A stretch of 64,000 bases of DNA from Dimorphilus gyrociliatus. Its lineage: Eukaryota > Animalia > Annelida. Within the stretch, counting starts at the first letter, position 1; each line of letters begins with the position of its first letter. The notes under the pieces are model-generated. The model had not been told where the DNA came from, made no database searches, and saw only the letters and a list, made by a program, of their open reading frames with translations. Made by a program: the position numbers and the translations under genes. Below are positions 1-35,035 of the stretch, in pieces. The stretch lies in assembly GCA_904063045.1 (NCBI GenBank), contig CAJFCJ010000015.1, forward strand, positions 310,001 to 374,000, in the 5' to 3' direction.

Positions 1-12
1 CTTTTCTAATAG

Positions 13-1102
13 GATCGTTATGCTTTAAGAACATCACCGCAGTGGGTAGCACCAGTACTAGATACACTATTAAGATCAAGAGAAAAACTGGAAATAGAAC
101 TAAATAGTTCAAACGACAATCCTTTAATTGATGACGAAAGAGGTGTTGTAATTCACGGTGGAAACTTTCAAGGAATATCTGTATCTATGGGTTTGGATCA
201 CGCACGACAAGCAATTCAATTGTGTGGAAAATTGCTACACGGTCAATTTCAAGAACTCGTGAATGGTTCAATGAATGGCAATCTTACCCCAAATTTATGT
301 GGTTCGGATTATAATGTAGATATGGGATTCAAGGTTTTTTATTAAATTATTTATTGAATATAAAATAAATTAATAATCAATTTTGTCTTTGACATTCTTA
401 CAATCAGGGTTGCGATACTGCAATGGCAGCGTATTGCTCTGAACTTGACGGCTTAGCAAATCCAGTTACAAATCATGTATTGAGTGCCGAACTCCATAAT
501 CAAGCCATTAACTCAATGGGATTTTTGTCGGCTCGAAAACTTGAAGAATCAATAGAAGTTCTAAAACAAATGATTGTACAGAGCCTAGTAGCAACCTGTC
601 AGGCAATTGACTTGAGATATCTTAAAAATTATGCTGAGGCCATCATTAAGACAATTTTAAATGAGCACAAACTAAACGAAAAGACATTCTACAGAGTATG
701 CCCTTGGTGGGTGTTGGTTTTTTCACCTCCAGAAGCTGAAGTGAGACTGAAAGAGATATCTCCTTTCATGAATGGCCTAAGATTTAAAGACTTTTTAAGT
801 GAGTTTGAAGAAGTGGCTAAGCCCGTTTTGGAGAGTATAAAAAATGGAACACTTGTTGATCGAATATCCGATGAATTAGGATATGGTAACATGCATATAA
901 TTTCTTTATTATATAATTTTGGTTATAATTTATTAATTTCATTTTAGGTACAAAAAAGGTTTATCGATTTCTTCGTCAAGAACTTAATATTAAATTTAAT
1001 ATAGGAGCAAATAGTCTTGATAAAGATATGGAAAAAGTTCTTTCTTGTATCAATTCTCAAAAAATACTCGACCTACTCCAAGAAATTGAGTTATACAGTT
1101 AA
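13..1102 (+). CDS. PAL: Phenylalanine/tyrosine ammonia-lyase-type (MIO-dependent aromatic amino acid lyase) gene, 3' part; 5' end lies before the window
   Basis: Exons 13-333, 408-885 and 948-1102 (stop TAA 1100-1102) join in frame across GT-AG introns 334-407 and 886-947. Translation contains DRYALRTSPQW, NDNPLID, HGGNFQG, DMGFKG, AMAAYCSEL..LANPVTNHVLSAELHNQAINSMG, AIDLR and YRFLRQEL, all recalled plant/fungal PAL motifs. The ASG/MIO motif is upstream and not visible. Confidence 0.9.
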
Positions 1103-1982
1103 CAAAAACACATTCTAATTGTTTCCAAAGTAATTACAAAAACAATTATATTATTAATTATAATTGCCTTAGTTTAAATTCATAAACTGGTTCTTGCAAG
1201 ATTTTGATAGAAGTATTTTTCTCAGGTCAAACGATTTCTTAATATTTCCTGTCACTCGCAATATTTTATTTTGCTATATTTATATTAAAATTATCGTATT
1301 GGATTATTTACTTTTTGTCTGAATGAAGCTCAAAACTCATTTTATGTTTTTGCTGTATATCCATTTTGAAATTTTAAAAGATGAATTACTTTTACTTTGG
1401 AGATACTTAATGAAAATATAGAATATCATGAAATATCATATTCATCTGTTTTTAATTATTTCTTACAAAAATAAGGGAAGGTTTATTACAGGTCGAATAT
1501 AAGAATATATTGGTTGATTCTTAATACTCTCTATATATGCTAGACTAGATATAGAAACATTATATTCACAATGAATATTCAACAACAAAATAGATACAGG
1601 CTAAAGGCATACAATGTTGTTTTCTATGCATATATATTTCTATCCTAATTACTTTGTATTGTAACTTAGAGCAATAGAGAGAAAACAACGAGAAGACCTC
1701 TCATTTAAATGAGATTTGTCACTGCTCAACCTATCGAAACTTATTTAAATGAAAGTGTTACGAGTTGTGTTTATCAGTTTCCCTCAGTAAACGACTTTAA
1801 TAATGAATATTGACTCAAAGGAAAAGGAAAATGTGATTTCTCGCATAACATATCTTGTTTTCGTGTATGAAAATAGTAGAATTGATAATTTTTATTAAAT
1901 ACATTAAGGAAATAAGTCCAGAACAAAAAAGAAAGGAAGCAACATTACAATTGTAAATAAGATAAATTATATTGTAATTATT

Positions 1983-4099
1983 TCAATAGATTACTGATGT
2001 AGGTTCTTCGTAACGATTATAGGTTCTAAATTGTCTTTGCTTCTTAGTTATTATTATCTTTCTTTTACTGTAGAAATAGATAAGAGATTAGTCATTATTT
2101 TTAAAAATACACAAGTATTTAAATCACTTACCAAATTAAGGTTAGAAACACTAAGAGGATAACATTCAAGGTAACAGAAAACGTTACTATTCCAGTATAT
2201 ATAAATAGTTGGAGACCTAATTCTGTTGTTTAGAAAGGGTTAGAAGAGAAAGATATAAAAAATTACTTCTGTTTACAAACCTTTTAAACAAGCGGTTGCT
2301 TCTATTTGCTTATCACACTTTCCGCCTGTCCAATTAAAGTCACATAGCCCATCGGGACATTCGCCAGTAACCGAATTGCAAGATATATCATATCTGCAAT
2401 GTCCACACGGTATATCGCATTTGGGGCCGTAGTAACGACCTTTAAGGCAAACATGTTTTATCTCATTTCCAATAGTACTCTGTTCAGTCACTCTTTCCAA
2501 ATTAAGTGGCACAATTGCCTCATGTTTAAACTTTTCTGGCTCATGAACTATTTCATTTGTTTCGGTTGTTAACAACTCAGTTGTAAGTGAATTTGTGGTG
2601 GCGCTGGGTAACTTAGTTATAGGAATATCACATCGGTTACCTGTCCAACCCACTTCACATTCTTCAAACAAACATTTACCATTGACATAACTACAGACTT
2701 TATGCTTACAATGAGCGCACTGATATTGGCACTTAGCTCCATAGAAATTACCTTTGCAAGCTGTAATTTGTAATAAGTGTTGGTTATTAAAAATATAAAA
2801 ACTATTAATTTACAGATAATTGAAAAAATATAATATATTTGATTGAATAGATAAGTCTATTAAACTTACGCCATTCGCATTCATCACCAAGTTGATTAGA
2901 TGAACAAAAGCCTTTTTTTCTATTATTTTTATCCAACAAGCAATAATGAAAGTATTGTTCGCAAGATGGTGCTTCTACCGGTAAAGATTTTTGACATATG
3001 AAAAAATGAACGTCTTCTGGATTAGTTTTAAACCAATTTAATTCACTGTCTATAACGAAATGTGATATTTCTGAATTATTAATATTAGTTATTCGTAACG
3101 TATCAGCTAATATAGAGGTAGAACAATCTAATTTATTATAAATATGATTGCTAATCAATTTTCCAACTCTCCAAAATTTTTCATTTCCAATTTCTAGAAT
3201 GTAAAGTAAATATACAGATTGTTATGTAATTATAATATTAATATCAATATTTTTACTTTACCTCTTTCTATGTTGGCTTTAAGGAAATCTAGATTAGATA
3301 GACTTTCAAGTAAAACTCCACCATTCTCGAAACAAAATTGAACAGCCTCTCCATAAGTTTTTTTCATTCTTACAAGACTATAACCAACAGTTGATAGATG
3401 ATTATAGGACAATTCAAGGTCATTTGAATTATTTATATCTACGAGTAATATCGAATGCCTTAAGAAATATTGTTAATAAATAAAATATTTAATGTACCTT
3501 TTAATTCATTTCCAAAAACTTTAATATCTTTTATCGTGAAAGTTTCGCATTCGTTAACTACAATGGTCACGTGCCTTCCAATAACTGAATTTTGACATTT
3601 CACAGTTTTTTCATTGAAATGGAAAGGATTAAACTTTTGTTTAAAGTTGGAACAAAAGATTTCTCCTTCATCTTGATAATACGTATTATTAACTTTACAA
3701 TACTGCTGGCCAATGTAAACTTGAAATGTTTTCAAAGTCGTGTTAGCGTCGCAACATTGCAACATATCTACGATAATCTTAGTGATCTCATAATCCTTTT
3801 CCAAAGTAAAACTTAGCCTTAACTCATCTTTAATATAATCCTTACGGCGAGTCACGTGAATACTATCAGTATACTTCGCAACCGAATCGCCTTGAACACC
3901 AAACGACGACCACGCTCTTGCTAATTCACCAATTTCCAATTGCTTCTCTATAAATTACTCAGTATTAAAATCATGTGTCGACTTTATAAGAGTTTATATA
4001 ATATTCAATGATGAAAAAAGTAATAATACCAGTCCTTATTGATGTAAAAATGACCGACATAAGCACGAAAATAGGCGAGAAGAGACACCATGGCGTCAT
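1983..4099 (-). CDS. Type I membrane protein: signal peptide, fucolectin/F5-8C-like domain, C-type-lectin-like domain, laminin-type/MEGF-like EGF repeats, Thr-rich stalk, TM helix, short Tyr-containing tail
   Basis: Seven phase-compatible exons: 4030-4099 (MTPWCLFSPIFVLMSVIFTSIRT), 3498-3947 (GRHVTIV...IKVFG), 3262-3438 (KTYGEAVQFCFENGGVL), 2870-3193 (FWRVG...HFFICQK), 2281-2760 (YGAKCQYQCAHC; YGPKCDIPCGHC), 2132-2222 (TM LFIYTGIVTFSVTLNVILLVFLTLI), 1983-2067 (KRK...YNRYEEPTSVIY*). TATATAAA lies upstream on the minus strand. Confidence 0.75.
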
Positions 4100-4759: not shown

Positions 4760-7700
4760 ATGAATATATTGTTTATTATATCAACTATTACTATAATTAC
4801 CCTCTCATCCATTTCATACGTAAATAGCAATTTCTTAGTGGAACAAGACTCGTAAGTATTTAACAGGAAATTTCATACTTTTATCCTAAATACTCTGTAT
4901 TTATCAGTAATCGGTCAGGTTAATAGATTTCTATAATGAAAAAAATAATTAAATATACAGTTAATTAAGGTTTTTAATTAATTTTTAGGTCATACTTTAT
5001 TGCTCTTCCAAACAAAGTCTATCCCGATGAGGTGATTCAGGTCTATGTGACAGTTCTCAAAATGAGAACCCCGTTTTTGAAAATTCGGGTAGCAATTCGA
5101 CTCGGAAATTTAGGGGAAAAATCGGAGGAAAAATGCAGTGTTTCAGCTACATTTACGTATCCTAGTACGAGAATTCTTCAAATGCAGATGTTAGATAACT
5201 CACCGGCTGGTAATTATACTGTAAATGTTGAAGGAACTTCAAGCGAAGGCATTTCCGGTTACCTTTTTCGAAATGAAACCAAAATAATGTTCATGAGGAA
5301 ACAAGTGTCAGTTCTCATTCAGCTAAATAAACCAGTGTATAAACAAGGGCAGACGATTAAACTGCGAATTATGCCAATAATGCCTAATCTTATGTCTAAA
5401 ACTGCAAATATGGATGTAAGTTTAGTGGATGCAACGAATACAACGGTTAAACTGTGGCAGAACTTACAAACGAATGCTGGCGGTGTTCTTGACCTTCAGC
5501 AGAAATTATCCGAGCAACCTCATTACGGAGAATGGAAAGTTTTGGTTTATACTTATGGTGAATATTATGAGAAAAAATTTCCTGTAAATGAATTCTGGGT
5601 GACGGCTATAGACGTCAATGTCAGTATGCCTATGTATTTGTCGGAAAATGATTTTGGAATAGCTGGTGTAATATCGGCAAATTTGAGTTTGGGTCAACCG
5701 GCTAAGGGAACAATTAGAATTGAGATGAGCGTCAAACCTCCTAAAGATATTGAAGCTGCTAAAGAATACGTTAAAGTTCATGCTATAAATTTAAAGGATC
5801 AATTCAATAAGAGTGAAACGGATGATATCAATATTCATTCATTTCAGGATGGTTCAGACAAAATTGTTCGAGAAACTAGATATTTTGCAGGCGTTACTGA
5901 TTTTATGTTTACAATGGACGAAATACGGAACTTATTGGGTGGTCGGAGCCCCGCAAATCACGAAATAGTCGTTGACGCCTACGTTTATGATTGGTTTTTA
6001 GTTCAAGAAGCGTCGGGAAGTTCTCGTGCAGTCGTTTACAGTAATGCAACGTCAATTTACTTACTTGGTGATAAGTCGAGAACATTCAAGCCGGGAATGC
6101 CCACTTCAGTCTATGTAAGTAAATTATAGAACAAACATGGTTATAAAACAATAATATAATTATTCTTATATAACATATTTTGTTTGTAGTTTGCCGTATC
6201 AAATCAAGATGGCACGCCCTTACATTCCCATCGACGGCAAGTGACCGTAAAACGAGTAGAAACCCCTAATTCCGAATTTATACCAGATGCCAAACTAATA
6301 GTTCGAGATGATGGAATTGCAAAGTATACTTTCACCCCAAGTAACGATGCTCGACAAATTCGATTAACAGCTCATTATGATCTCTATCAGTCAAATGCTG
6401 TTGATGTTTACATGACCAGGCATTATACAACTCATGATAGATTCCTCTATATATCATCTTCGACAGAGACTCCGCAAGTAGATCAATACATGGTATTTAC
6501 TGTTCGAAGTAATACTTTGTTAGACAACGTTCATTATATTGTCACGGCCGCTAGCAATATAGTGACAGGAGGAGTGATAGAATTGTACTCCAGCCAAAAA
6601 ACCTTTTCTATTGCCGTTTCTAGAGATATGGTTCCAGAAGCTAGAATGGTTGTATGGACAATTTTCAAAGGAGAAATTCTTGCCGATAGTGTTAATTTTT
6701 TTGTTAATGGAACAAGATTAAATCCGGTTGATTTAAGAGTTAATAGAGGTAAAGATTTTACAGGAGATGTAGTTGAAATAACCGGATGGAGTGACCGATC
6801 AGCTTATATTGGTTTTTCGGCACTTTGTCATGAACTTTATGTCTATTCTGGAGGATCTAATTTTGTCCAAGAAACTGATATAATTAATGAGTTAAGGTCA
6901 TTTGATAGTCACGCCAATACCAGTTTTCGATTTCAATGGACATTTGGAGAGACTTTCCGGGAATTAGTTCATTTCCCTGCACCGACATATGCAATAGACG
7001 CTAACAAAACTTTCGAATTTGCTGGATTGATAGTCTTCACTGATGCCAACGTGACGAGAATGCCCCATAATTGTAATGAAACTTTAGGAGATTATCCTTG
7101 TATGTCCGGCAGACAGTGCTTCAGAATTGAAGAATGGTGTGATGGAGTCATGAAATGTGAGGACGGTGTAGATGAAATGGGTTGCACTAACAGAGTTCCA
7201 AAATATCCCTTCACAAAACCGTTTGACCGTCTAAGTTTATTGACTAGGCACTATAATGAAATGGGCGATTGGGGTTGGTTAGGACACTTTCTTATGCCGA
7301 ACGGGCGTATTGATCTCGAAACCGAAGTACCTGATGAACCAATGCCGTGGGTTGTAGATGCTTTCTCAATATCAAGGGATAAAGGTTTCGGTATGGTTTT
7401 CAATCCATCGAGGCATCAAGCAACAAGACCTTTCTATATGAGAGCCGAGGCACCTGAGTCTGTAATAAAAGGTGAACAAATTGGTGTCAGAATTTCGTTA
7501 TTTAATTATTGGACTGAAAATCTTGAGTGTCTAGTAACTCTGCACGATTCAGATGATTACGCGTTTGTTGTTGTAGAAAAGGACGGTATAGTTTCTTCCT
7601 ATAGCCCTCGTCTATTAAGAGGCGATATACAAACAATGGTTTACATGCCGTCTGGTTTTGTGAGAGAACTACACTTTCCTGTGTTACATTTGAAAGAAGG

Positions 7701-9811
7701 ATGCTTCTCGGTTACCATATCTGTTGCCAATTTTATGTACAAAGATGAAGAAACAGTTGAGATGTGTAGTACTTTCGATGGTGTAACCAACTACCTAAAT
7801 ACACCTTTCGTCATTGATTTAATCAATAAGGGCTCAAGAGCTATACCAGATTTGGAAATACCTGTTCCCGAGAGATTTATTAGACCACAAGAGAGACAGC
7901 ATCTTTACGTTCCAGGTTCTCCGGAAGCTACAATCGGAATAGTTGGAGACATTGTAGGTCCAGGCTTCTTTGAGGACTATTTGGACGCTGAAAATTCTAT
8001 CAGGAAACCTTTCGGAGGAGGTGAACAAAGCCTTTATAATTTAGCTACAAATATTCTTTATCTTCGTTATATGAGTGGAACAAATCAATTAGCGAATGAT
8101 CGCCTTCGGTTGTCAATTGACAAGGTTAACGAAGGACTTCAAAGACAAATGAGTTATTATACTCTGAAGAAAGATTCTAATAACCACGATATAGGATACT
8201 TCTCGCTATTTAGAGACTATCAAGAGGACACTCCTAGTGTTTGGTTAACTGCACATGCCCTAAAGGTATTCCACAAAATGTACTCGGGTAATTATCTAAA
8301 GATTGGTATCAATCAAATTTTCATGGCAACAAAAACTCTTACCGAAATGGGCAGATGGCTATGTGCAGCTGATAAGAGAGATGACGATAGAGGTTTTATT
8401 GAAACTTCTCCTCATTATAATCGAAAAATGTGGTTAAACGGTACTGAAAATTATGATAAAATAGCACTTAGTGCTCATGTTCTAATAGCTTTACAATCGG
8501 CAAGATCAGCTCTACAAGGCTCAACAGGCTGCGATAGCGTAATTTCACAGACTATTCAATATCTTAGGGATAATGCGGCCGGTGACCATTCACCATTCAC
8601 AACCGCTATTTTAGCATATGCGCTACTTTCTAGTGGAGATACCAGCAGCCCAGCTCTAAATAGGTTACGAAAGATTCAAATTGATAAGGAATATTGGGCA
8701 AATAAACGTATTCCAAAAAATGGAATTCGATTTGAAGATAATTTACCGGTTCATCAACCAAGAAAATGGTACGATAATGAAGCATATGGGGTTGCAACGA
8801 CGGGTTACGCAATTTTAGCTTTACTTCAAACTTCTGATGGCTATAGCGAATCCTTCCCAAGCATGCTGTGGCTTCAATCAATGAGAAATTCATTTGCGGG
8901 TCATTCTTCTACTGAGGATTCAATTATTGCTCAAGAAGCACTTGTCGAATATTCCTTGAAGGATATGAACAAAGCGTTTTATCAAATGTATATTGAAGTA
9001 TCACCAACCTCTAATCAGAACTTGACCTATGTACTTCGTTTGAATAAAACGAATTGGATAGATTTACAAGAAATTCCAATAACACCTGTTTGGGGTTACG
9101 TAAGAGGTACAGCAACTGGAAATGGAATAGCTTTAATGCAACTATCTACCAAAGTGAATGTAGAATATTCAAGACAAATTGTGCCTAAACCAGAAGGAGA
9201 CTTCTTTTCAATTGAGTTAAAAGAGAGCTACGGTGGCAAGAATTATTCGTTTGTCGAATTTAATCCTTGCGTCAGATGGGTAAGACCTGATCTATCAAAT
9301 ACTAGCGGTATGACTGTTTTAGAAATGGATTTACCAACTGGTTATAGAATTACCAACGACGTACTTAGATCATATGCTCAATCTGGTCGAGTACCAACAT
9401 TGAGAAGAGCGGAAACTTATGATAGAAAAGTTGTCTTCTATTTCGATTACGTAGGTTATAAGGAAGATACATGTGTAAAATTTAGAACTGATAGATGGTT
9501 TCCAGTCGCCAATTTAACAATTCAACATAAAATTAGAGTCTACGATTATTATGAGCCAGGTAGAACAAACTATAAATTCAATTTTTTCATTCATGTATTC
9601 AAAAATAACTTTCTTTTTCTTTTCAGGTATGCACAATACTTCATTATATACAACACATTACCTAACAAGTTTGCATATTTGCCAAGTTTGCGGGTCATTC
9701 CAGTGTCCATATTGCCCTTTTTACAATCATGCTCCAGTTGTAGGTGGCGCTACCTATTTACTTTTATTTTCAATTTTTTCTATGTTGTTTTTATTTTTAT
9801 TTATAAACTGA
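4760..9811 (+). CDS. Mcr: Thioester-containing protein family member, Macroglobulin-complement-related (Mcr/Tep6-like) type
   Basis: Exons 4760-4851 (signal peptide), 4989-6114, 6190-9559, 9627-9811. A2M-type motifs KPVYKQGQTIKLR, PFYMRAEAPESVIKGEQ, SVWLTAHALK, GMTVLEMDLPTGY, VYDYYEP; LDLa module at 7072-7185; thioester site reads GGGEQ (8014-8028); C-terminal ICQVCGSFQCPYC plus hydrophobic tail matches the recalled Mcr architecture. Confidence 0.88.
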
Positions 9812-10188
9812 CTCGAATTTTAGTTGTTTATTTTGATTTTATTCATTATATATATACATTATATGCAAAAAAAAGACATGGTTGCTATGAATTTTCATTA
9901 TATTTTTATTATTCTTTTTTTTTTCAAATAAAAGAAAGAGAGAGAGAGAAAAAAAACAAATAAAATAAACAAAAAGAAAAGGAAATAGACAAAAAATAAT
10001 AATTTAAGAAAGCTTTTTTTAAAAGTTTTTCTTTATTATTTTTCATAATTATCTACCAGTTTTTTTTAAATATATTTCGTCTTGTTCTTTTTACCAATAC
10101 TAATTATTATAACTATAAATGAAAATACTTCAAACTCATTTAAATATTTGATAGCAAAAACAAACAAACAAACAAAAACATATAAACG

Positions 10189-10971
10189 TTACTGACGTAC
10201 AACAGATGACGGACATTGCGGTACGTGACATTTAAAAGTTTTCTTCGGTCCTACGGATGTTCTCTTTATTCGGCAAGGAAATCTCTTCCTTGTACATGTC
10301 ATCTTCTTTATGCAGACGGCGTAAAGTCGAAGGCATTTATAATCTTTTGGTGAACACTTATTACAGGTACTCTCTGATTCGTGATAACAAGCTCGACAGG
10401 ATGTTAGTTGACAGGGGGCGCTGCATTCTCTTTCAAAAAGAGCTATTCCACTAGAATTAAAGTTAATAAAAATGAAATTTTAAAATAACGAGTTTTAACA
10501 TAATTATTTAATTAACCTTTTAGCAGAACAGATAGCTCTGGGACGTTTTCTACAGTACTCTGGAGAGCATTTAGGATGACATTGATGAGTATCTTTAAAA
10601 GGTTCATCCAATTGTCTTCTACTCTTTGTAATAAACCTGACACAACGACCCTTTTCAGGCCATTTTTTTCGCAATCTATTCTTTTTCTTTATTAATGGTT
10701 TGCAGTATAAACCTTGATTGCATTTGCCGAGATAATAGTATACTCCTCCGCAATTCTCACCTATAACTTTAGCGCATTTGTCACAACATCCGCAAATTCC
10801 TTTCGTCCTCTCTCCTTTACAAGATAAATTTACTTCGGCACATTTAACTCTATTGCAAGGCTGACATTTAACGACTGATGATTTTACATATAATTGCTGA
10901 ACATGCTGCTTTACTTCAAAACATAGTAGGACAAATATGAATAAAGCTAAATTATAGGCTGAAGCGTTCAT
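10189..10971 (-). CDS. Secreted IGFBP-N-terminal-domain protein with a second Cys-rich basic domain
   Basis: Exons 10517-10971 and 10189-10450, separated by a 66-nt GT-AG intron. Hydrophobic N-terminus, then CQPC...GICGCCDKCAKVIGENCGG...GKCNQGLYC (IGFBP GCGCCxxC-like motif); the second half has 16 Cys. Confidence 0.8.
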
Positions 10972-12551
10972 CTTTTATCCTATTTCGATTAACCAAGTAT
11001 ATTTTCAATCCTTTATTTCAGCACTATATACGAAATTAAGCGCCCCCTTTGTTATTTTAGCAAACAAACTGTTTGAATACATAAGGTCAACAACAAATCC
11101 AAGTGTAAGTGTTCAGCGTTAAATAATTACGCAACAATTAATTAGTCTCAACACTGGAATACATTTATTCTTAATTTTCCTTCTACTTTGATAAATTTAA
11201 AAATTCTATATTTTTAACTATTAGTATAGTAACTTTGAGCTATTCAAAAAATTCTCTTCTCCAAGCAAAACATTCAAGTCTGATGTAGGGAAAAAAAGGT
11301 TATCGTATGTAAACACTGAGTTGACATTTTCAAACTTTATAGAAGCATTTTGTTTTTGAACTTTTCCTCATTTCTGATTTCTTTACTGTGAATATAGTCA
11401 AGAATGAATAGTTGAAAAATTAATTGTTCAATATTCTCAAACAGGTCAGTTCTTCGTCCATCTCTACCTTGAATTAAAATTGACTAAGAGAAAGGGAAAG
11501 AAACAGATGATGTAGAAACAAGATGGTGGCAACAACGGGTATAAGATACATACTAGATAAAAGGAATTGAGTTTCTCTTTCTATTTTATGAAATTGTTCA
11601 TACCTGAACAAAAAACTTAACCTATAGCGTTTGCTAATTGTAAAGTTTACATTTTGCAACAAGTTTACTATTAGCTCTTAAATTTTCTAGATTAATTGAA
11701 TAGATTACAAACAAAGAAATAGAGATTGCACGCAAAGACGAAAGGGTACAATTATCTTAAATTAGAATCAATCTCATCTTATGAACTCTTAGATTTGCAA
11801 TTAAAAAATGTTTCAAAGGAAAATACTTAAATGTAATCTAAATTATGAATGGATTGGAGAAAGATGAAAAAGATGTAACTGTGGGAAAATTTACTACTAA
11901 TGAGCAGTTGATATTAATAGTATTTCTCATAATCAACTTGTTCTTATTTAATATTCTCACGTTCATTGAGAAATAGTATTTCTTATGAATATTGATATTT
12001 AGAACAAATATATCATGAAAATCCTTTTAAGAACAGTTCTTGCAAGTACTTTATTCGTATAATGTAACTCATTTCAAATGAGATATTTATTATTATAATC
12101 ACTATTCCAAAATAAGGATATTATTTCACCGTCAGTGTATTAATTCTATACAGCTAGTTAGCCCTTCCAATATGTTAGATGACTACTTGAATCTATTTCT
12201 GTATCTATTATTAACGTACTTGGAGTGTAGTGTGACGTCAGAATTTAACATTGTTCTCGCAATCCTTTCAATCAGACTAGAGTTCTTGATTTAATTATGT
12301 AATATATATTTGCACAGTTTTTGACTCGATCAGGATGAAATAAACAAATATTAGTTAGTAAATTAGCTAATTTGTTAGTGCATATTTTTGAGCTTTTCGT
12401 TAAACTTTTCTTTTTTAAAATAACAATCAAATAAAAAATTAAAATATATTGGTTTTTTTTCTTAGAATTATTTTAAAAACTTTAACTTAAATCCATGGTT
12501 TGACATATAAATTTTAAAATTATATGAACAAAAATACACTTTCTTAACAGT

Positions 12552-15606
<3,055 letters not shown>

Positions 15607-16608: not shown

Positions 16609-18143
16609 TCTATAAATATTAGACAACACTAATTTATGATTCTAAAGCCTAAAGCCTACGAATTATTATGCTTAGCAATGGAAATGCATCTAAGAAACAA
16701 AATGTTGATAGAATGTAAGGAATTATTGAATGATATTATAAGGATGTAAAGAGAGTATAGAGGATCTTAAAGCTTTTTCCTTAAGTATTATTTATGTAAA
16801 AGGGTTGGAGAAATAAAGCAGGAGACGGCTGTGCCTTATACTTAAATATCCTTTTTTTCTTTATTGAATTATTAGGAAAATTTTAAATTCTTTATACGTA
16901 GTTTATCTAACAAGGTTCTTTTTTCTTAGAAAATAAAAGCAATGTATATTATATTTAACTTAAATATAGTTAATTGATTAATTGAATCAAAATCAGGCCG
17001 TTGACCCCCGGATGTCTTTTAAAAAAATCTCCATAGGATATGTCCTTAAATGCAGTATTTGTGTAGCCCACTATCTATTATTTTAGACGGTAATTAACTT
17101 ATATTAAAGGACGAATTCCAAATTGATGATTATTTATAATTATCGTAGAATTGCAATTTGTATATGGATAATACTTAACATAATGAAAAGGATACTAATT
17201 CGTGTATACCGCATTTTAAAAGATACGAAACTAGCAATTTGCAAGACCTATAGCAATTGTACTTAAATACGTCAATTAACCTAGGAAATTGTAAAGAAGG
17301 AATTGCGAACAGCTTGTAAAACCGACAACTAATTTTAAATAAGGAGCATCTTCTCAGCCTAATACATTTATGACTGAGAAAATATTAAATATAGAATTTA
17401 AAGAGAACAAGAACTGAATATACAATTAAACGTCAAGCAGACTATTTTTATTATATTTCTTAAATATGAATATACTTTACATATACAGTATAAATTTATA
17501 TACTGTATATACCTTTACATTAAACGCATAAATAATATGAATAATACTGAAGAGTAAGCTCTGGATCAAAATTAAGAATGAAAAGAAACAAAGAACGATA
17601 TAATGCTTCCATAGAAATATTCACGTCGTTACACCAAAATAGAAAGACACTTATTAGATACTAGAGTTGAGTTACCGCTGAAAAGAAGTGGGATATTGTA
17701 TGATGATGAAAGAAAATTTACATGCAAATATTTTCTTAGTAACTAGCCGAACAGATAGCAATTATTATGATTAAATCCTTTAGTAACTAGTCCCTTCTTT
17801 TCTTCTAAATCATTTGATAAATACAATATAATATTTATTATATTAGTGAGAAATATACATTTAAGTTATTTATTCACTTGTACGTCTTCTAACCGTTAGA
17901 ATTTAGTACGAAATAACCCCAAAAAAACCTACCTTTCTTTGTAAAAAGCTCAACAGCAATAGGTGATATACTTGGTTGTCAATTTTTAGTGCGTAGCATA
18001 CTTAATAAAGTGCTAGGACAAATTACTTTACATTCTTAAATGTTACTCTGCTTATTTTACATTTAACTCAGAAAAGCGAATATAGTTTATGTCTTAAAAT
18101 GAATCTTTATAGAAATAAATAATTAATAAATGATAAAAATTTT

Positions 18144-18494
18144 TTACAGATGTATAGGTTCTGTATATTCGGTTAAATCCTCAAAAGTTTTTGCTTGAAG
18201 AGAAGGTACAGTTAGAAGAACCATTTGCTTTATTTGTTTCAACTTTTCCATTCTTTCTTCTTCGGTATCTTCCTTTTCTTCGCTATGCTCTTCCGGAGGA
18301 GTTGTAATTAATTTTGGTATTATAAATTTTCTAAATTGAAATCTCTTCTTTGAAGATTTTCCTGATAAATCCAAAATGTTCGGCTTCTGTGTTGAGACTT
18401 TTTCAAATTGTTGAGTTAATCTAAAAACGTTGCAACTGCAACAGATTTTAGATATTGCCGAGTGTTTTTTTTCGAAAGTGCCAGACTTGTTCAT
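18144..18494 (-). CDS. Orphan single-exon ORF, about 116 aa from the first ATG; function unknown
   Basis: Uninterrupted ORF in otherwise stop-rich DNA (MNKSGTFEKKH...PKLITTPPEEHSEEKEDTEEE...), with a CRE palindrome TGACGTCA at 18541-18548 just upstream. No recognisable domain. Confidence 0.4.
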   Translation of the reverse strand: MNKSGTFEKKHSAISKICCSCNVFRLTQQFEKVSTQKPNILDLSGKSSKKRFQFRKFIIPKLITTPPEEHSEEKEDTEEERMEKLKQIKQMVLLTVPSLQAKTFEDLTEYTEPIHL

Positions 18495-19713
18495 TCTCGA
18501 TGCATGTAATGTTAGCTGTAACAATGCCGACGCCACCGAGTGACGTCAGGTCGGTATGAAAGCGAGGTGAACGCCCATTTTAAGCCTATGTGACACGTAA
18601 TAAACTTCTCACTATCTCCTATATTTAGTGATAAAGTATAAAAGGGTGCGATAAATTGCTTGGTTTGTAATTTCTTTATTGGTTGAATTATTTCAATATT
18701 TTTTCAATATTTTTCCTATTTTTCGCAAAATGCTCTATTAGCGAAAAATAACGTTTTGTACTTGTATATATTGATTTTCGTAGAAATGAGAAAAGAGGGA
18801 ACAATATGCAAAAGATTTTTATATAGAATGAGTTTATTGTTTGTTATCTTTCTACACATAAAATATATTTAAAAATATCTATAATTATTAATGGAAGAAG
18901 GCGTAATATAACGCCTTCTATCCTTCTCAAAGCTTTTCCCACTTTACTTTATGCCCCACCATTCCATCGTTATATTTTTCAACCATATTATCTCTAACCC
19001 TTAACTTTTTCAAAGTACAACATTTTTCCAACTGATTATTATAACCTTTATATGAAGACTATATAAAGTTCATCTTAGAAGAGTTTGAACTTTTCCACAA
19101 ATATAATTTTATACCATTAACGCCGTCATCAACAACCGACCAAAAGATGATGGATTTAGGTGTAATAAATACGGATAAATAGCATTATTAAGAGATCTAA
19201 TAAAACTTTAATATAGCCGATAGTTTAGATATTCCAATATATGTTTTTTCTTTCACCAATAAATAGCGGAAGAGAGGAAGAAGAGAATATTAAACAATAC
19301 CGTAAAAAATAAAGAACAAAGTAACTTTATTTCACGCGCATTTTTGTTAATAATAATAGAGACTGGGATAGTGAAACAATGGAATAATCTTTTAAAAGCT
19401 TATTCTCTTTTTCTAGTTTATTTTGTCTATTTTCCTCCTTCAATTCAGTATTTATCCTATTATATAACTATTTCTATTTTTAGATTAAAAGTTGATAATT
19501 ATTTCTTCTATATAGTAAATATAGATACTGTATATAAACATGTATATGTATTCTTTGAATACAGTGTAAATGATGTATATAGACACACTTTGTTTGGATT
19601 CTTTGACATCTATTTATAGATATAGCGTTATATATAAAAAAGTTCTTTCAAGAAAAAAATAGATAGTACATTCAACCTAGTTTTCGTTCAGTGTATATCA
19701 TTGTCCATAAATA

Positions 19714-21155: not shown

Positions 21156-24100
21156 TCAATTCTTTTTTATAATAGAATTAACAAACTTTTCTAATGAATT
21201 ATCAGTTCTGATAACAATTAGAAAAGAGAAAAGTACAAATATACAAACAACTGGAAATGTTGCTATTTCAAATACAAATCTTGGAGCAAATATCTTCCAT
21301 ACCATTAGATGTCTTCTTAATAATCCAGCAGATATTAAAGTGGATAATATTTTTATTGCATGAAATAATAAATATATTATACACACTCGCCATACTTCTT
21401 TTTTAACTAATGCAGTTTCGTATACTGAAAATTCCCCTCTTTCATGTTTTCTTGTAGCAGTCCAAAATGCAATTAAAACTACTGTAACACTGCTTATAAC
21501 GTGAGAAGCGAATGTATTTAAAGCTATCATTATCACTGGTAGTGCGTATACTTCGTGATCACCTATAAAACCTACAAATGCCGATTCCCATTTTATAGAT
21601 GTAAATGTAGCTTGATGGCCCGTTGCGAAGAAGTAGAAATAGGACAGAATAACCCATGTAAGTATACTGAGATTTTTACTATTTTGACAATACGTTATAA
21701 TTTCTAGTAGGCACGCACCAGAGAGAATTTGTAGAGCTGTTTATGGATTCAATTTTTTTAAATTGCAAAATATACAAATATTAACTATTTACCTAACGAT
21801 GGCGTATAACTATCTCCAACCAATAGACTCAGGGTTACTGTTAAACAAATTAGGACTATTAATATGGGGCTCGAGTAGACGGTGAGGAGTCCGAAAACAA
21901 TTGGTGGTGTCTTTTTGGTTTTAAGTCGTTCAAAGATTAATGGAATTAAATTGTTTGTTTGTGGAATTGAGTTGAATTTTGATATTTCCATGACGCATAA
22001 TGGATAGATAAGCGTAAGCAGAATTGATACAGTAATAAGTAAATAGGTAAGTCTTGGTGGAGCGACAATTATCCAACTATCCAATTTTTCATACACATTA
22101 TTGGGTAGTAGTTGAAGAGCCCAATGGACGCAATTAGATAAAATACATATTGGGACAATGTACTTGAAAGAAACAATTGGTGGGGAGAAAGAGTTTAGGC
22201 TACCAACGGCCTTCAACCAAAGGCTAATACCACCAGAAGCCGTTGAAATAGCGGATAAACTTAGAAGGAATCTCATTTGCTTGTAACCTGATAAATTATC
22301 AGATATAGAAGAGAGAGGTTTAAGCCATCTGGTCGCTGTACAATCTTGACCTAAATAGGACGAAAAAAGAATGACAAAAAGGTAAAAAGAAAGTTTTAAA
22401 GGAAAAGGCAAATTCACCTTGTTCTTCTCTACAAGCGCAAAATTCTCTTGAAATTCTAATGGAAATTGAAAAAAAGAAGACTACCAGTAGAAGATGTAGC
22501 TTCTTACTGGATGCGCTTGTTCTATAAGCCATAAACCATACAATCGACGTTAGTAAAAACTGTAAAATCTTATCTTCATGAACCACGAAACTATTTGAAA
22601 GATGAATAATGTTGAATAGGATAGTAAAGAAGCATAATAAGATGTTTTCATTTGTCATTTTGCATTTTGTGAGAGTATAGATGACAGTTGGACCAACAAT
22701 AATGGAAGCAAGTAGATTTGATATCACACAAGATATAAAAACAATGAAATGCACAAAGAAAATGGATGTTATATTTTTAATATCCATTTCCTCTAAATTT
22801 AAGAGAAATATGAAAACTACTATATTCATTAGTAGTAAAATTCCTCCAGAAAGCATCCAATCTGTATCAAATTTAGCCCAAATGAGTCTACACATTTCTT
22901 TAGTGGAGTGTAAATAGGTTTTATAATTTGATTCAATTTCATTTAAAACTTTCGTTACTCCTTCAAATTTTCTATCAATTTTTATTCTTTGTATTATTTC
23001 TTTTAAATCTTTTTGGCATTTTTCCAACAATTTTTCCAATTCTGAATATTGACGATGGTTAAATTCATCGGATTGTTTAATATAAGTTTGCAAATATCTT
23101 GATATTTGTTGAGAATTTATTTGGAGTACTTTTAATCTTTCCAATTGTGAATTAATACTGGATTTACTTGAAAAAAAGTCTGCTAATATTGTACCTAAAT
23201 TTGAAAATGGTATAGGTAAGTCTAAAAGTAAGGAGAGAGTTGGAACAAGATCAATTTGGGAGATAGTTTCGATTTTATCTTTCTCTAAAAAGTCAAATCA
23301 AGTGTTTAGTTTATATTGTTTATTTTATTGTTTATTATACTAACTTGGATTTTCGAACATCTCTTTTGGACTATAGAAAAATGCTGCAGCTTCTACTTCT
23401 TCTGGACTATCGCCTCCGTGATCTCCAGTGGCGGTCATACCATGATCACCGATTACCACAAGAAGAGTATCATTTTTTAACTCTCCGACAATTGATCTAA
23501 GCACATCGTCCATCTGTTCTAATTTTGCTGCCATAGCGGGATGATTAGGACCGTATCTATGGCCACAATGATCAACACCTAAAAAGTGGGCAATAAATAG
23601 ATTCCAATCTCTCTTCTTTAACTCAGGTATTAAGTGTTTTATAACACCATTATCGACGGTGTGAAGATCTTTTACATTGAAAGATGGATATGGGAAAGCT
23701 TTGCGGAAATCATCGAAGAGGCTCACCCACGTATCATCTCCCATAAACGTTATATTCTGAAAATGGAAGAACAAATATTTTAACCCTAGAAAAAGCTCAT
23801 TCTTTCTTGGTCTTTCATAAATAGATAAAAAAAAGACCAACTTTTCCTCTTTTCACCATTTGACGTAGAATATTATCCTCTAGGACTTTGGCACTAGCAA
23901 AATTAGCTCCAGCATCTACAAAGGTAGGTAAACTACCAGTTGTCAGTGCTTTTAGTCGTTGCATGGTTGTTGTTGGAGGATCGGCTATGAATTTATAAAA
24001 TTGGCTGTTATTTCCCTTTTTTTGAAGTAATTCATGAATGATTCCCAAACGATTTTGAAAAGGTAAAGCCATTTTTTTATTTAAACTTGCGTTATAATTG

Positions 24101-32386: not shown

Positions 32387-35035
32387 ATGCAATTAAAACA
32401 GATAATTATCTGTTTTATATTCGAATGCAGTAAGTTTTTCTTTAATAAAGAAATTATGAATGAAAAGTAAATGAAACTTTTTTATAGGAATATTTATTGA
32501 AAGTTTATATTTGAGTACCAATCATTATTGCAATCATAGTCATTATGGGATAATTTCAACACTATATCAAACATTGAACAGTCTAGATGTTCGATATGTT
32601 GTAATTTTCCATGAGAATTATCAATTTCCCGATTGTATTGTATCAAGAATTAATAGTTTAGGTAAATATGTTGAATTCGCCAATGAAGGTTACTGGAATA
32701 AAGATTGGGAGTCAATGCCCGATGAATATTTATTTTTAGTATGGACGAACGTATCCCTAATGGAATCTATTATTAAAGAGGTCTCTTGAAAAAAGTTTCT
32801 TTTCATTCTGTTAATAAATATCCAAAGTTCAATAATAAAAACAAGTGTAATATTTTCTGAATAGGGAAGAAAACAAGGACTTTTCAGACCCTTGTTTAAA
32901 TGGATTATTATCTTACCTACAACTTTTTCAATTGAAACTGATATTGGAAATTATTTAACACATTCAGACAGTGTTATACTATTTCATAATGATTTATTGA
33001 AATCTTCAAATGTTTTAATATATAAATGGTCTAATTCAACTGTTGAAAATATTGGACATTTTTCAAATGGAAAAGTACACTCTTTTTTTTCAACTATAGA
33101 TCTTTTCCATATTCTTAATTATTTCATATTTTTTAATAGATTAACCTTCAAAAGCATATTTTTCAAAAGTATCCAAACTTTGAAGATTATCAATTTTTTG
33201 TTGCTATTGTACCTGTTCGTATAAGTTTGCTTTAAATATTAATAACTATAATAAAAAAATATACGTGTCTCTATGATCTACTTCATTAATTGGTTAATAA
33301 TTATTTAAATTAGGTGGATTTTATACAAATGAAGAAGACAAAAATAAAAGATCAAGTCTTTTATGTTGGACTCTTTGTGAAAATATTGGATTTGTTAGCG
33401 GAAAAGTTAAAATTTAGGTATTTTATTTATTGTATATTCATTGTATATTCATAATTATGTTAATTTATTCATATTTCCTTCACCTTTCACAGATATAAAT
33501 TACTAGAACCAGATAATTTACAATTTGGTATAATAGAGAATGGATCTTGGAATGGAGCTATTGGAATGCTAGACAATAAGGTTTGCAAATTATTTAGAGC
33601 AATCAAGTTTACTAGGACAGTAATAATGTGAGATTTTACCAATAATTCTATACTTTTCCTCTGTTTTTACGGTTTCTAGTGTTTCCTTTCTTGAAAAACA
33701 TCATCTATTGTTCGTTGTTTCTTTGAAGGAAAAATGCCAGCTTTGTCCCTATAATTAATTAAACATACACTATGAGAACTAGGAATCAGTCCAATTAATC
33801 TTCAATTTACTTAAAGAGGCTTTATTTAGAAACAAATTGAAATATGATCAGAAATAGATCGTCTGAATATGTCAATTTGGATTTAATGCTATTTTCAAAT
33901 GATAACAATTTATTAACAGAAAGCTGATCTAGCTATTGGACCCTATAACGTTCTTGAACAGCGTCTGGAGGCAGTCGATTTCATGACGGCTGTTGGCAGT
34001 GAAACTCTTGCAATAATCATGAAAAGACCCGATCATAAAGTTCTTTCATCCTTCTTTATTACTAAACCTTTAAAACCGGAAGTATGGTATTCCTATTTAG
34101 CTTTTGTAATCCTGGCGTTCGCTTTCATATATTTATACACGAAATTGGATGTTCATGAAAATAATATGAGGGTTTACTCTGAATATAGTGTGTTTAGATT
34201 GTCCCTGTGGTATGCTATTTGCGCTAGCCTAAATCAGGGAAGCGTGTTACCAAACTCAAAAAATTCATCAGTTAGAATTCTTGTTGCATTTGTATGGATA
34301 ACAACAGTAGTAGTTATTGCCATCTATACTGGAAATCTTATCGCATTTTTGAGGTTTTTATATTTTCTTTCGTCAGCAATATTGAAAAATAAAGCTTCCC
34401 CTTGTTATTTATTACTTAATAGCGTTAGGAAGGCAAAATTACCTGTGGAAACGCTAGAAGACGCGGTTACAAATAGTGAATTCCGTCTAGTAATTCTTGG
34501 TAGTTCGGCTCATGAATTCTTATTTAAGACTGCAAAGACTGGAGTATTTCGAAAAGCTTGGGAAAAGATTGAAAAAGATCTTCCTTATAGCATAGTTTAC
34601 AGCTTGAAAGATGGACTTGAAAGAGCCAAAAATCAGAATACAGGCTTTGTTAATGAAAGATCGGTAATGAACTTAGTTTCCCATATGGATTGTGATTATG
34701 TAACTACTCCAGTTGAAAATGACTTTCATTCGCGTAGTATTGCATTCCCCGTTCAAAAACATTGGCCTTATTTAGAGACATTTAACAATGCACTACAAGA
34801 AGTAGTCATTGAAGGGGGATATGTTGAAAAATGGAAAACCGATTTAAATTTAACGGAGCCAGCGAATTGTGAGAGTCAAGAAAGGATAAGAGAAGCAGTT
34901 CATTTCCATGAAATAATTGGTGTACTTTATCTTTTCTCAATTGGATTAACTATATCTGTTATTGTATTATTTATTGAAAAAACTTTCTATCGAATAAGAT
35001 ATCGATTATTTCGAAATAAAGTGGGTGTTAATTAA
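32387..35035 (+). CDS. Divergent ionotropic receptor (IR/iGluR-like chemosensory channel subunit)
   Basis: S1 lobe GSWNGAIGML|DNKKADLAIGPYNVLEQRLEAVDFM; M1 KPLKPEVW; pore SLWYAICASLNQG; M2 RILVAFVW...IYTGNLIAFL; S2 PVETLEDA...FPVQKHWPYLETFNNAL; M3 GVLYLFSIGL. Hydrophobic N-terminus at 32387; several short introns. Confidence 0.85.

Follow-up and report, generated by a model that had tools for sequence, protein, structure and literature searches.

A gene for a probable PAL/TAL-type ammonia-lyase in the annelid Dimorphilus gyrociliatus and its relatives in bivalves and a brachiopod

Introduction

Phenylalanine and tyrosine ammonia-lyases (PAL and TAL) are the entry enzymes of phenylpropanoid metabolism, and textbooks present them as plant, fungal and, in some cases, bacterial enzymes. 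Animal and bacterial histidases (HAL/HutH) belong to the same superfamily and Pfam family and share the chemistry of the 4-methylideneimidazole-5-one (MIO) group. Here we analyze a 64,000-nucleotide stretch of the genome of the miniature marine annelid Dimorphilus gyrociliatus (the window), in which positions 13-1102 are the 3' part of a resident nuclear gene for a eukaryotic PAL/TAL-type MIO enzyme, probably a lyase (GenBank protein DgyrCDS10259; P0161).

The closest described relatives are the PALs of plants, exemplified by parsley (Petroselinum crispum) PAL1 (PcPAL; 1W27/6F6T), the grass PTALs (Sorghum bicolor PAL1, 6AT7; ZmPTAL), the fungal PAL/PTALs (Rhodotorula toruloides 1T6J/1Y2M; Aspergillus, Lasiodiplodia) and, more distantly, bacterial TAL (Rhodobacter sphaeroides RsTAL, 2O6Y). 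According to a 2022 review of MIO enzymes, a His-Leu pair at the selectivity switch occurs in tyrosine-accepting enzymes (ZmPTAL His123-Leu124; RsTAL His89), and changing this His to Phe in RsTAL shifts the preference from tyrosine to phenylalanine (PMC9002059, citing Watts et al. 2006). The same review covers animals only under HAL/histidase (PMC9002059).

Gene structure and encoded protein

The five-exon gene model on D. gyrociliatus assembly GCA_904063045.1 (scaffold CAJFCJ010000015.1, 1,425,422 bases) gives the complete protein of 628 amino acids. The entire gene has four GT-AG introns of 57, 58, 74 and 62 nt, and the window holds exons 3-5 (Table 1). The spliced product of these three exons has 317 residues and equals DgyrCDS10259 residues 312-628, residue for residue; exons 3 and 4, the two compared by search, are 100% identical to the GenBank protein. 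Base 1 of the window is base 11037 of the D. gyrociliatus locus on which the upstream exons were retrieved (L001), and the two are base-for-base identical from there.

Exon 3 contains DRYALR (Tyr314, Arg317), NSSNDNP (Asn347) and HGGNFQG (Phe363). Exon 4 completes the catalytic core with SAELHNQ (Glu446, Asn449, Gln450) and opens the C-terminal helical domain. Exon 5 encodes a C-terminal helix pair (VYRFLRQELN...) that has its homologue at the C-terminus of PALs from plants and fungi. All motifs on which a first-pass annotation of the window had based its call of a PAL-type enzyme (DRYALRTSPQW, HGGNFQG, KLLHGQFQELVN, DMGFKG and AMAAYCSEL...LANPVTNHVLSAELHNQAINS) are found in the spliced product. 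The two short introns that it had proposed within the gene (74 and 62 nt) are confirmed, have GT-AG borders and are host-style in length.

Family membership

Exons 3 and 4 match the Pfam family Lyase_aromatic (PF00221) with 107 bits (E 1e-30) and 62 bits (E 5e-17), respectively, at a cut-off of 27.3 bits. Among solved structures, the best relative of exon 3 is sorghum 6AT7 (E 2.6e-30, compared with about 1e-8 for HAL chains) and that of exon 4 is parsley PAL (E 1.8e-23), HAL chains being absent among the matches listed. The full protein matches parsley PAL in the PDB with 371 bits (E 1e-109), followed by sorghum PTAL (353), Taxus phenylalanine aminomutase (PAM; 327-338), Rhodotorula PAL (302-315), cyanobacterial PALs (213-231) and Rhodobacter TAL (160). 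A confident AlphaFold2 model built from a 51-sequence alignment (pLDDT 91, pTM 0.93) has a TMq of 0.85 to PcPAL 6f6t across some 660 superposed columns, among them the C-terminal helical domain. This multi-helix domain occupies residues 509-623 of the model, its C-terminal motif aligns to PcPAL 627-706, and it is shorter than in plants and fungi.

A diverged form of the ordinary animal histidase, converting histidine to urocanate, would belong to the same Pfam family, but the comparisons make it exceedingly improbable. HAL-named chains reach only 158-204 bits where PAL reaches 371, with the exception of 3czo, an entry whose length and matched range are the same as those of the Anabaena PAL entries. 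In an Atlas structure search, a plant PAL aligned with a TM score of 0.92 over 617 residues and a chordate HAL with 0.77 over 513. DgyrCDS10259 also has a PAL-type C-terminal domain and a His-Leu switch, whereas HAL/HutH lack that domain and carry a different switch, and in phylogenies it clusters with eukaryotic PALs, away from prokaryotic MIO enzymes. Thus, neither HAL as the closest match nor a core without the PAL C-terminal domain was found here, and the gene is not a HAL orthologue. The canonical-histidase reading is ruled out at the level of sequence, fold and tree, in line with the first-pass annotation, which had favoured PAL/TAL over histidase.

Compared with described lyases, DgyrCDS10259 shares with plant PAL the full-length fold, the MIO triad, the catalytic and carboxylate-binding residues, and a C-terminal helical domain that ends in a YxFVRxEL motif. 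It differs from parsley PAL in overall sequence (about 33% identity) and in length (628 versus 716 aa), lacking both the N-terminal extension and the short post-switch loop and having a reduced C-terminal domain. The eukaryote-type C-terminal domain is also present in the fungal enzymes. These are 33-35% identical to the annelid protein and, unlike it, carry long insertions both in the C-terminal domain and downstream of the switch. RsTAL, in contrast, lacks the C-terminal domain altogether.

Active site and predicted chemistry

The selectivity switch and the MIO triad had been expected upstream of the window, and both are encoded there. The triad Ala169-Ser170-Gly171 (exon 2) aligns to A202-S203-G204 of PcPAL. 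Further residues of DgyrCDS10259 that align to identical residues of parsley PAL are Tyr82 (Y110), Asn224 (N260), Gln311 (Q348), Tyr314 (Y351), Arg317 (R354), Asn347 (N384), Phe363 (F400), Lys418 (K456), Glu446 (E484), Asn449 (N487) and Gln450 (Q488). The catalytic residues of parsley PAL are thus all kept, and each of them is conserved in 75-79 of the 79 members of the animal clade described below.

The switch is His109-Leu110, in place of Phe137-Leu138 in PcPAL. Grass PTAL and bacterial TAL have the same His-Leu pair, and in fungal enzymes the first position is likewise His (H-Q, H-H). The animal clade is not nested within monocot PALs or bacterial TALs; the His at the switch was gained independently of grass PTAL and bacterial TAL. 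Within the clade the switch varies: across its 79 members there are 13 residue pairs plus two gapped rows, with HL in 40, LL in 14, HV in seven, FL in five, and others including HI, SV, HS and FF. Paralogues in one species can differ (H-S and F-F in Owenia; S-V and H-V in Dreissena), and this variation, also between paralogues, suggests substrate diversification.

Based on these residues, Ala169-Ser170-Gly171 would cyclise to form the MIO electrophile, Tyr82 would act as the base, and Arg317, Asn224 and Asn347 would grip the carboxylate, so that an L-arylalanine would lose ammonia to give a trans-arylacrylate. Given a His109-Leu110 switch of the kind found in grass PTAL and bacterial TAL, L-tyrosine would be the likeliest substrate, possibly with L-phenylalanine as well, and the products would be p-coumarate (and cinnamate). 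DgyrCDS10259 most likely works as a tyrosine-accepting MIO ammonia-lyase; by analogy with the characterized enzymes, the His at the first switch position predicts tyrosine preference but is not proof of it. For this protein, enzyme activity, substrate, product and physiological role are all predicted.

A clade of animal relatives

In a HMMER scan of exon 4 against 1.84 billion representative proteins, no close relative appeared; the top full-length matches came from Dreissena and Owenia and were about 40% identical and about 600 aa long. A profile search retrieved a block of about 80 proteins with roughly 600-1130 bits, whereas the best fungal or plant PAL scored at most 553 bits. Named members come from bivalves (Dreissena, Mytilus, Mya, Ruditapes, Mercenaria, Mactra, Pinctada), annelids (Owenia, Dimorphilus, Ridgeia, Lamellibrachia, Capitella, Helobdella) and a brachiopod (Lingula). 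The first-pass annotation had drawn its inference for this one animal. Its call of a PAL/TAL-type gene holds, but the gene is no peculiarity of a single species, as the family spans several lophotrochozoan phyla.

Some of these proteins have names in databases, among them 'phenylalanine ammonia-lyase 2-like' of Lingula anatina and the UniProt entries 'Phenylalanine ammonia-lyase' of Dreissena, Ridgeia, Pinctada and Helobdella, all in the same clade. They are about 570-680 aa long and have the same catalytic residues, as well as the conserved last intron in the genes that were read. Their identity to DgyrCDS10259 is 39-52%, their names are automatic, their switches differ from its H-L (S-V and H-V in Dreissena, H-I in Lingula, F-L in Ridgeia), and the Dimorphilus gene has three extra introns. 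None of them appears as a characterized enzyme in the literature searched.

Several genomes have extra copies: Lingula carries three in tandem, Owenia two, and Ridgeia one together with a fragment. The three Lingula anatina genes (LFEI02001149.1, 1-2153, 8001-10671 and 16790-18671) encode PAL/TAL-like proteins of 623-624 aa within 19 kb, which indicates a local expansion of the gene family. Four relatives (P0171, P0196, P0153 and P0155) are full-length spliced coding sequences on Logan contigs of 2.0-2.7 kb, and these contigs therefore look like transcripts. Other clade members were seen on two contigs from ENA metagenome projects (L085 and L086; 1.17 and 1.72 Mb), in which the remaining open reading frames (ORFs) are short and fragmentary and include a collagen; both contigs are probably unannotated animal host genomes.

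Phylogeny and intron history

We built trees with FastTree (247 sequences) and IQ-TREE (LG+C20+F+G4 PMSF; 56 sequences). The sampling consisted of animal, plant, fungal and prokaryotic sequences, without Amoebozoa, early-diverging fungi or animal HAL, which was compared by score only, and the 'fungi' and 'plant-like' groups include several representatives without names. The animal proteins are monophyletic (FastTree 99; IQ-TREE 100/97) and stand apart from the fungi (100/100) and from the plant-containing group (100/100). Support of 100/99 separates the eukaryotic clade of plants, fungi and animals from 16 prokaryotic sequences. Within the animals, DgyrCDS10259 falls into a subclade of 14 rows that also contains Lamellibrachia, Ridgeia, Capitella and Helobdella, and the other main subclade holds the bivalves, Lingula and Owenia.

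When the tree is rooted with prokaryotes, the animals are sister to the fungi (95/87). AU tests do not secure this relation: neither animals with plants (p 0.26) nor fungi with plants (p 0.33) is rejected, and the branching order of the three eukaryotic lineages is therefore not fixed. Prokaryotic loci were also sought with the family alignment as query. The best match among 80 loci reaches 34% identity, and in nearly all cases the similarity is confined to the core. Both an ancient transfer and descent from an opisthokont ancestor with many losses would fit these sequences, and the evidence does not separate the two.

Gene structures speak to the age of the clade. The phase-1 intron before the last exon, inside the Gly codon of LGxG|T, lies in the same alignment column in five genera, namely Dimorphilus, Owenia and Ridgeia (annelids), Lingula (brachiopod) and Dreissena (bivalve), and is present in all clade genes whose DNA was read. 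At two further loci searched by tblastn, including the deepest branch of the clade, the last exon lies downstream and begins exactly at the position of residue 578 of DgyrCDS10259. About twenty ORF-predicted relatives on genomic contigs show non-homologous sequence directly after LGxG, which is expected because these ORFs would run into the shared intron. A second intron (phase 0, after LRxLx) is placed within two residues in Owenia and Lingula, and its position is also where the partial Capitella model stops. Since introns are common to these phyla, the gene was already intron-bearing in their common ancestor. The great age suggested in the first-pass annotation is thus borne out by one intron common to annelids, a bivalve and a brachiopod, and the animal clade has been inherited with this intron since before these phyla split.

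The three other introns of the Dimorphilus gene (after residues 124, 311 and 418) have no counterpart in Owenia, Ridgeia, Lingula or Dreissena. Their distribution resembles lineage-specific gain; the genome has been described as one that mainly loses introns. Of the three plant and fungal genes that were read, none shares an intron with the animal genes: the plant gene (Dioscorea) is intronless, and the fungal genes are intronless or have one intron, placed elsewhere than the animal introns.

Host residence and genomic neighbourhood

The coding sequence of the lyase gene has a GC content of 37.3% and a third-position GC content (GC3) of 27.3%, close to the values of the adjacent A2M gene (37.7% and 27.9%), and its introns have 16.7% GC. 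D. gyrociliatus has a 73.8-Mb genome with a median intron of 66 bp (PMC7854359), and the four intron lengths of the lyase gene fit this median. We observed no foreign marks in the composition or structure of the gene.

One could consider contaminating DNA of a fungus or plant, or a recent horizontal transfer specific to this lineage, misjoined to animal genes, given that the top-scoring solved structures are plant and fungal PALs and that the joins rest on the deposited assembly. However, the gene lies inside a 1.43-Mb scaffold with animal genes on either side, it agrees with the host in GC, GC3 and intron lengths, and it shares an intron with annelids, bivalves and Lingula, to whose proteins it is 39-52% identical as against 33-35% for fungal and plant PALs. 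In addition, five sequencing runs from two studies contain 56-100% of the sampled words of window positions 1-3000, that is, more than half in each run. Contamination and recent transfer are thus effectively excluded, with hardly any probability left to them. The lyase gene is a resident, ancient member of a lophotrochozoan PAL/TAL-type clade, which seems to be under selection.

Downstream of the lyase gene, the order is a 558-amino-acid gene without family assignment, the A2M/TEP gene and the IGFBP-like gene (Table 1). Short-range and more distant neighbours include the metazoan-type A2M/TEP, IGFBP-like, WD40 and Lig_chan (iGluR/IR) genes within the window, in line with the animal neighbours that the first-pass annotation had named, and SDR, ankyrin and phosphodiesterase-family genes, the last an ordinary metazoan neighbour too, are found farther along. 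The large A2M/TEP gene bears a Cys-rich insert resembling LDL-receptor class A (CMSGRQCFRIEEWCDGVMKCEDGVDEMGC); this annelid gene is built like insect Mcr. An exact sequence look-up of the IGFBP-like ORF returned no match. Upstream, the lyase gene is head to head with an acyltransferase, beyond which lies an aldo-keto reductase; the two span 2.3-9.2 kb upstream of the window. The other upstream neighbours are a small gene of no known type and an EF-hand gene.

Neither the acyltransferase nor the aldo-keto reductase is a neighbour of the lyase genes in Owenia, Lingula, Dreissena or Ridgeia. We rejected a conserved gene cluster, since the neighbours differ across all species examined. In Owenia fusiformis (CAIIXF020000010.1; 420-3834 on the minus strand, 8001-10586 on the plus strand and 16732-18586 on the minus strand), two PAL/TAL-like genes have an O-methyltransferase with plant-type Dimerisation and Methyltransf_2 domains about 6 kb away. 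It is a possible hint of a downstream partner, and is absent from the lyase loci of the other species.

Table 1. Features of the lyase gene and its neighbours, given in window positions or, for features upstream of the window, in positions of the D. gyrociliatus locus L001.
Feature	Position	Strand	Remarks
Intron 1	L001 10374-10430		Upstream of window; 57 nt; after residue 124
Intron 2, 3' end	window 1-12	+	Acceptor AG at 11-12; whole intron 58 nt, L001 10991-11048
Exon 3	window 13-333	+	321 nt; residues 312-418; ends Lys418
Intron 3	window 334-407	+	74 nt; GTTTTT...CAG; GT...AG; phase 0
Exon 4	window 408-885	+	478 nt; residues 419-577 plus one base
Intron 4	window 886-947	+	62 nt; GTAACA...TAG; phase 1, within Gly578 codon
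Exon 5	window 948-1102	+	155 nt; residues 578-628; TAA stop 1100-1102
A2M/TEP-family gene	window 5032-9963	+	MG2, A2M_BRD, A2M, TED_complement, A2M_recep domains
IGFBP-like gene	window 10504-10971	-	Single ORF
WD40 gene	window near 14000		
Phosphodiesterase-family gene	window 21785-23840	-	GPI ethanolamine-phosphate-transferase-like
Lig_chan exon	window 33983-35035	+	iGluR/IR-type
NRF/Acyl_transf_3 acyltransferase	L001 5577-8720	-	Head to head with lyase gene
Aldo-keto reductase	L001 1805-3906	-	Beyond acyltransferase

Discussion

We consider it quite possible, though short of probable, that annelids, bivalves and brachiopods possess an ancient, vertically inherited and active PAL/TAL-type clade, and make p-coumarate, cinnamate or related arylacrylates themselves. 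Several points weigh against reading DgyrCDS10259 as a tyrosine-accepting lyase. Taxus PAM superposes on the model as well as PAL does, and lyases and 2,3-aminomutases cannot be told apart by sequence. The switch rule was established on enzymes of bacteria and plants and the switch varies in the animal clade, so the substrate preference may differ from the prediction. DgyrCDS10259 has Thr422 where PcPAL has Ile460. Splicing and expression in D. gyrociliatus are taken from the deposited gene model. Finally, conserved partners for a downstream pathway were not found near the lyase genes of Dimorphilus, Owenia, Lingula, Ridgeia and Dreissena, whose neighbours differ.

Two alternative chemistries bear on these points. 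As an MIO-dependent 2,3-aminomutase of the TAM/PAM type, the enzyme would yield a beta-amino acid and release no arylacrylate. Taxus PAM structures match the model like PALs do (TMq 0.84-0.87), PAM chains in the PDB come near the score of PAL, two Lamellibrachia relatives are named 'phenylalanine aminomutase' by NCBI, and the residues that serve both chemistries are all common to lyases and mutases. To our knowledge, there is no reliable sequence signature for MIO aminomutases. We regard this alternative as quite unlikely: most characterized eukaryotic PAL-type enzymes are lyases, PALs are the best sequence matches, the NCBI names are automatic, and a mutase-specific sequence feature was not identified. 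The enzyme could instead be a lyase for another substrate, such as histidine, L-DOPA or a tyrosine bearing a halogen or another modification, with a role in catabolism or in making phenolics for cross-linking or defence. Such a role would agree with the wide variation of the switch pair across the clade, with Thr422, and with the multi-copy nature of the family in Lingula and Owenia, which suggests diversification. It is nevertheless unlikely, as characterized TALs and PTALs carry His-Leu and HAL matches far less well.

The sequence itself is not new, because the gene model and its relatives are already in public databases, some of them automatically named 'phenylalanine ammonia-lyase'. Prior annotation of PAL-like genes in other invertebrates had been foreseen, and such genes were indeed found for Dreissena, Mytilus, Mya, Lingula, Owenia, Ridgeia, Capitella and Helobdella. 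Literature matches to an animal PAL/TAL query were plant papers or concerned animal histidase. In the literature and genome-paper supplements we found no description of annelid, mollusc or brachiopod PAL/TAL-type genes, a coverage that is incomplete and leaves a prior description possible. The annelid, bivalve and brachiopod family is apparently undescribed.

If a conserved, intron-bearing clade with an intact active site in three phyla of marine invertebrates holds, some animals may make arylacrylic acids endogenously. Roles for these compounds are a matter of speculation and might include UV screens, cross-linkers, and precursors of 4-hydroxybenzoate or of phenolic defence compounds. The family is easily tested, as the enzyme is soluble, the UV assays are simple, and D. 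gyrociliatus is kept in the laboratory and has published stage-specific RNA-seq. For the debated origin of eukaryotic PAL, such a clade would add a third deep lineage for testing. If the proposal is true, either a PAL-type gene was present in the opisthokont ancestor and was lost many times, or it was acquired by a very old transfer into the lophotrochozoan ancestor, and either history would revise the view of PAL as an enzyme confined to plants, fungi and some microbes.

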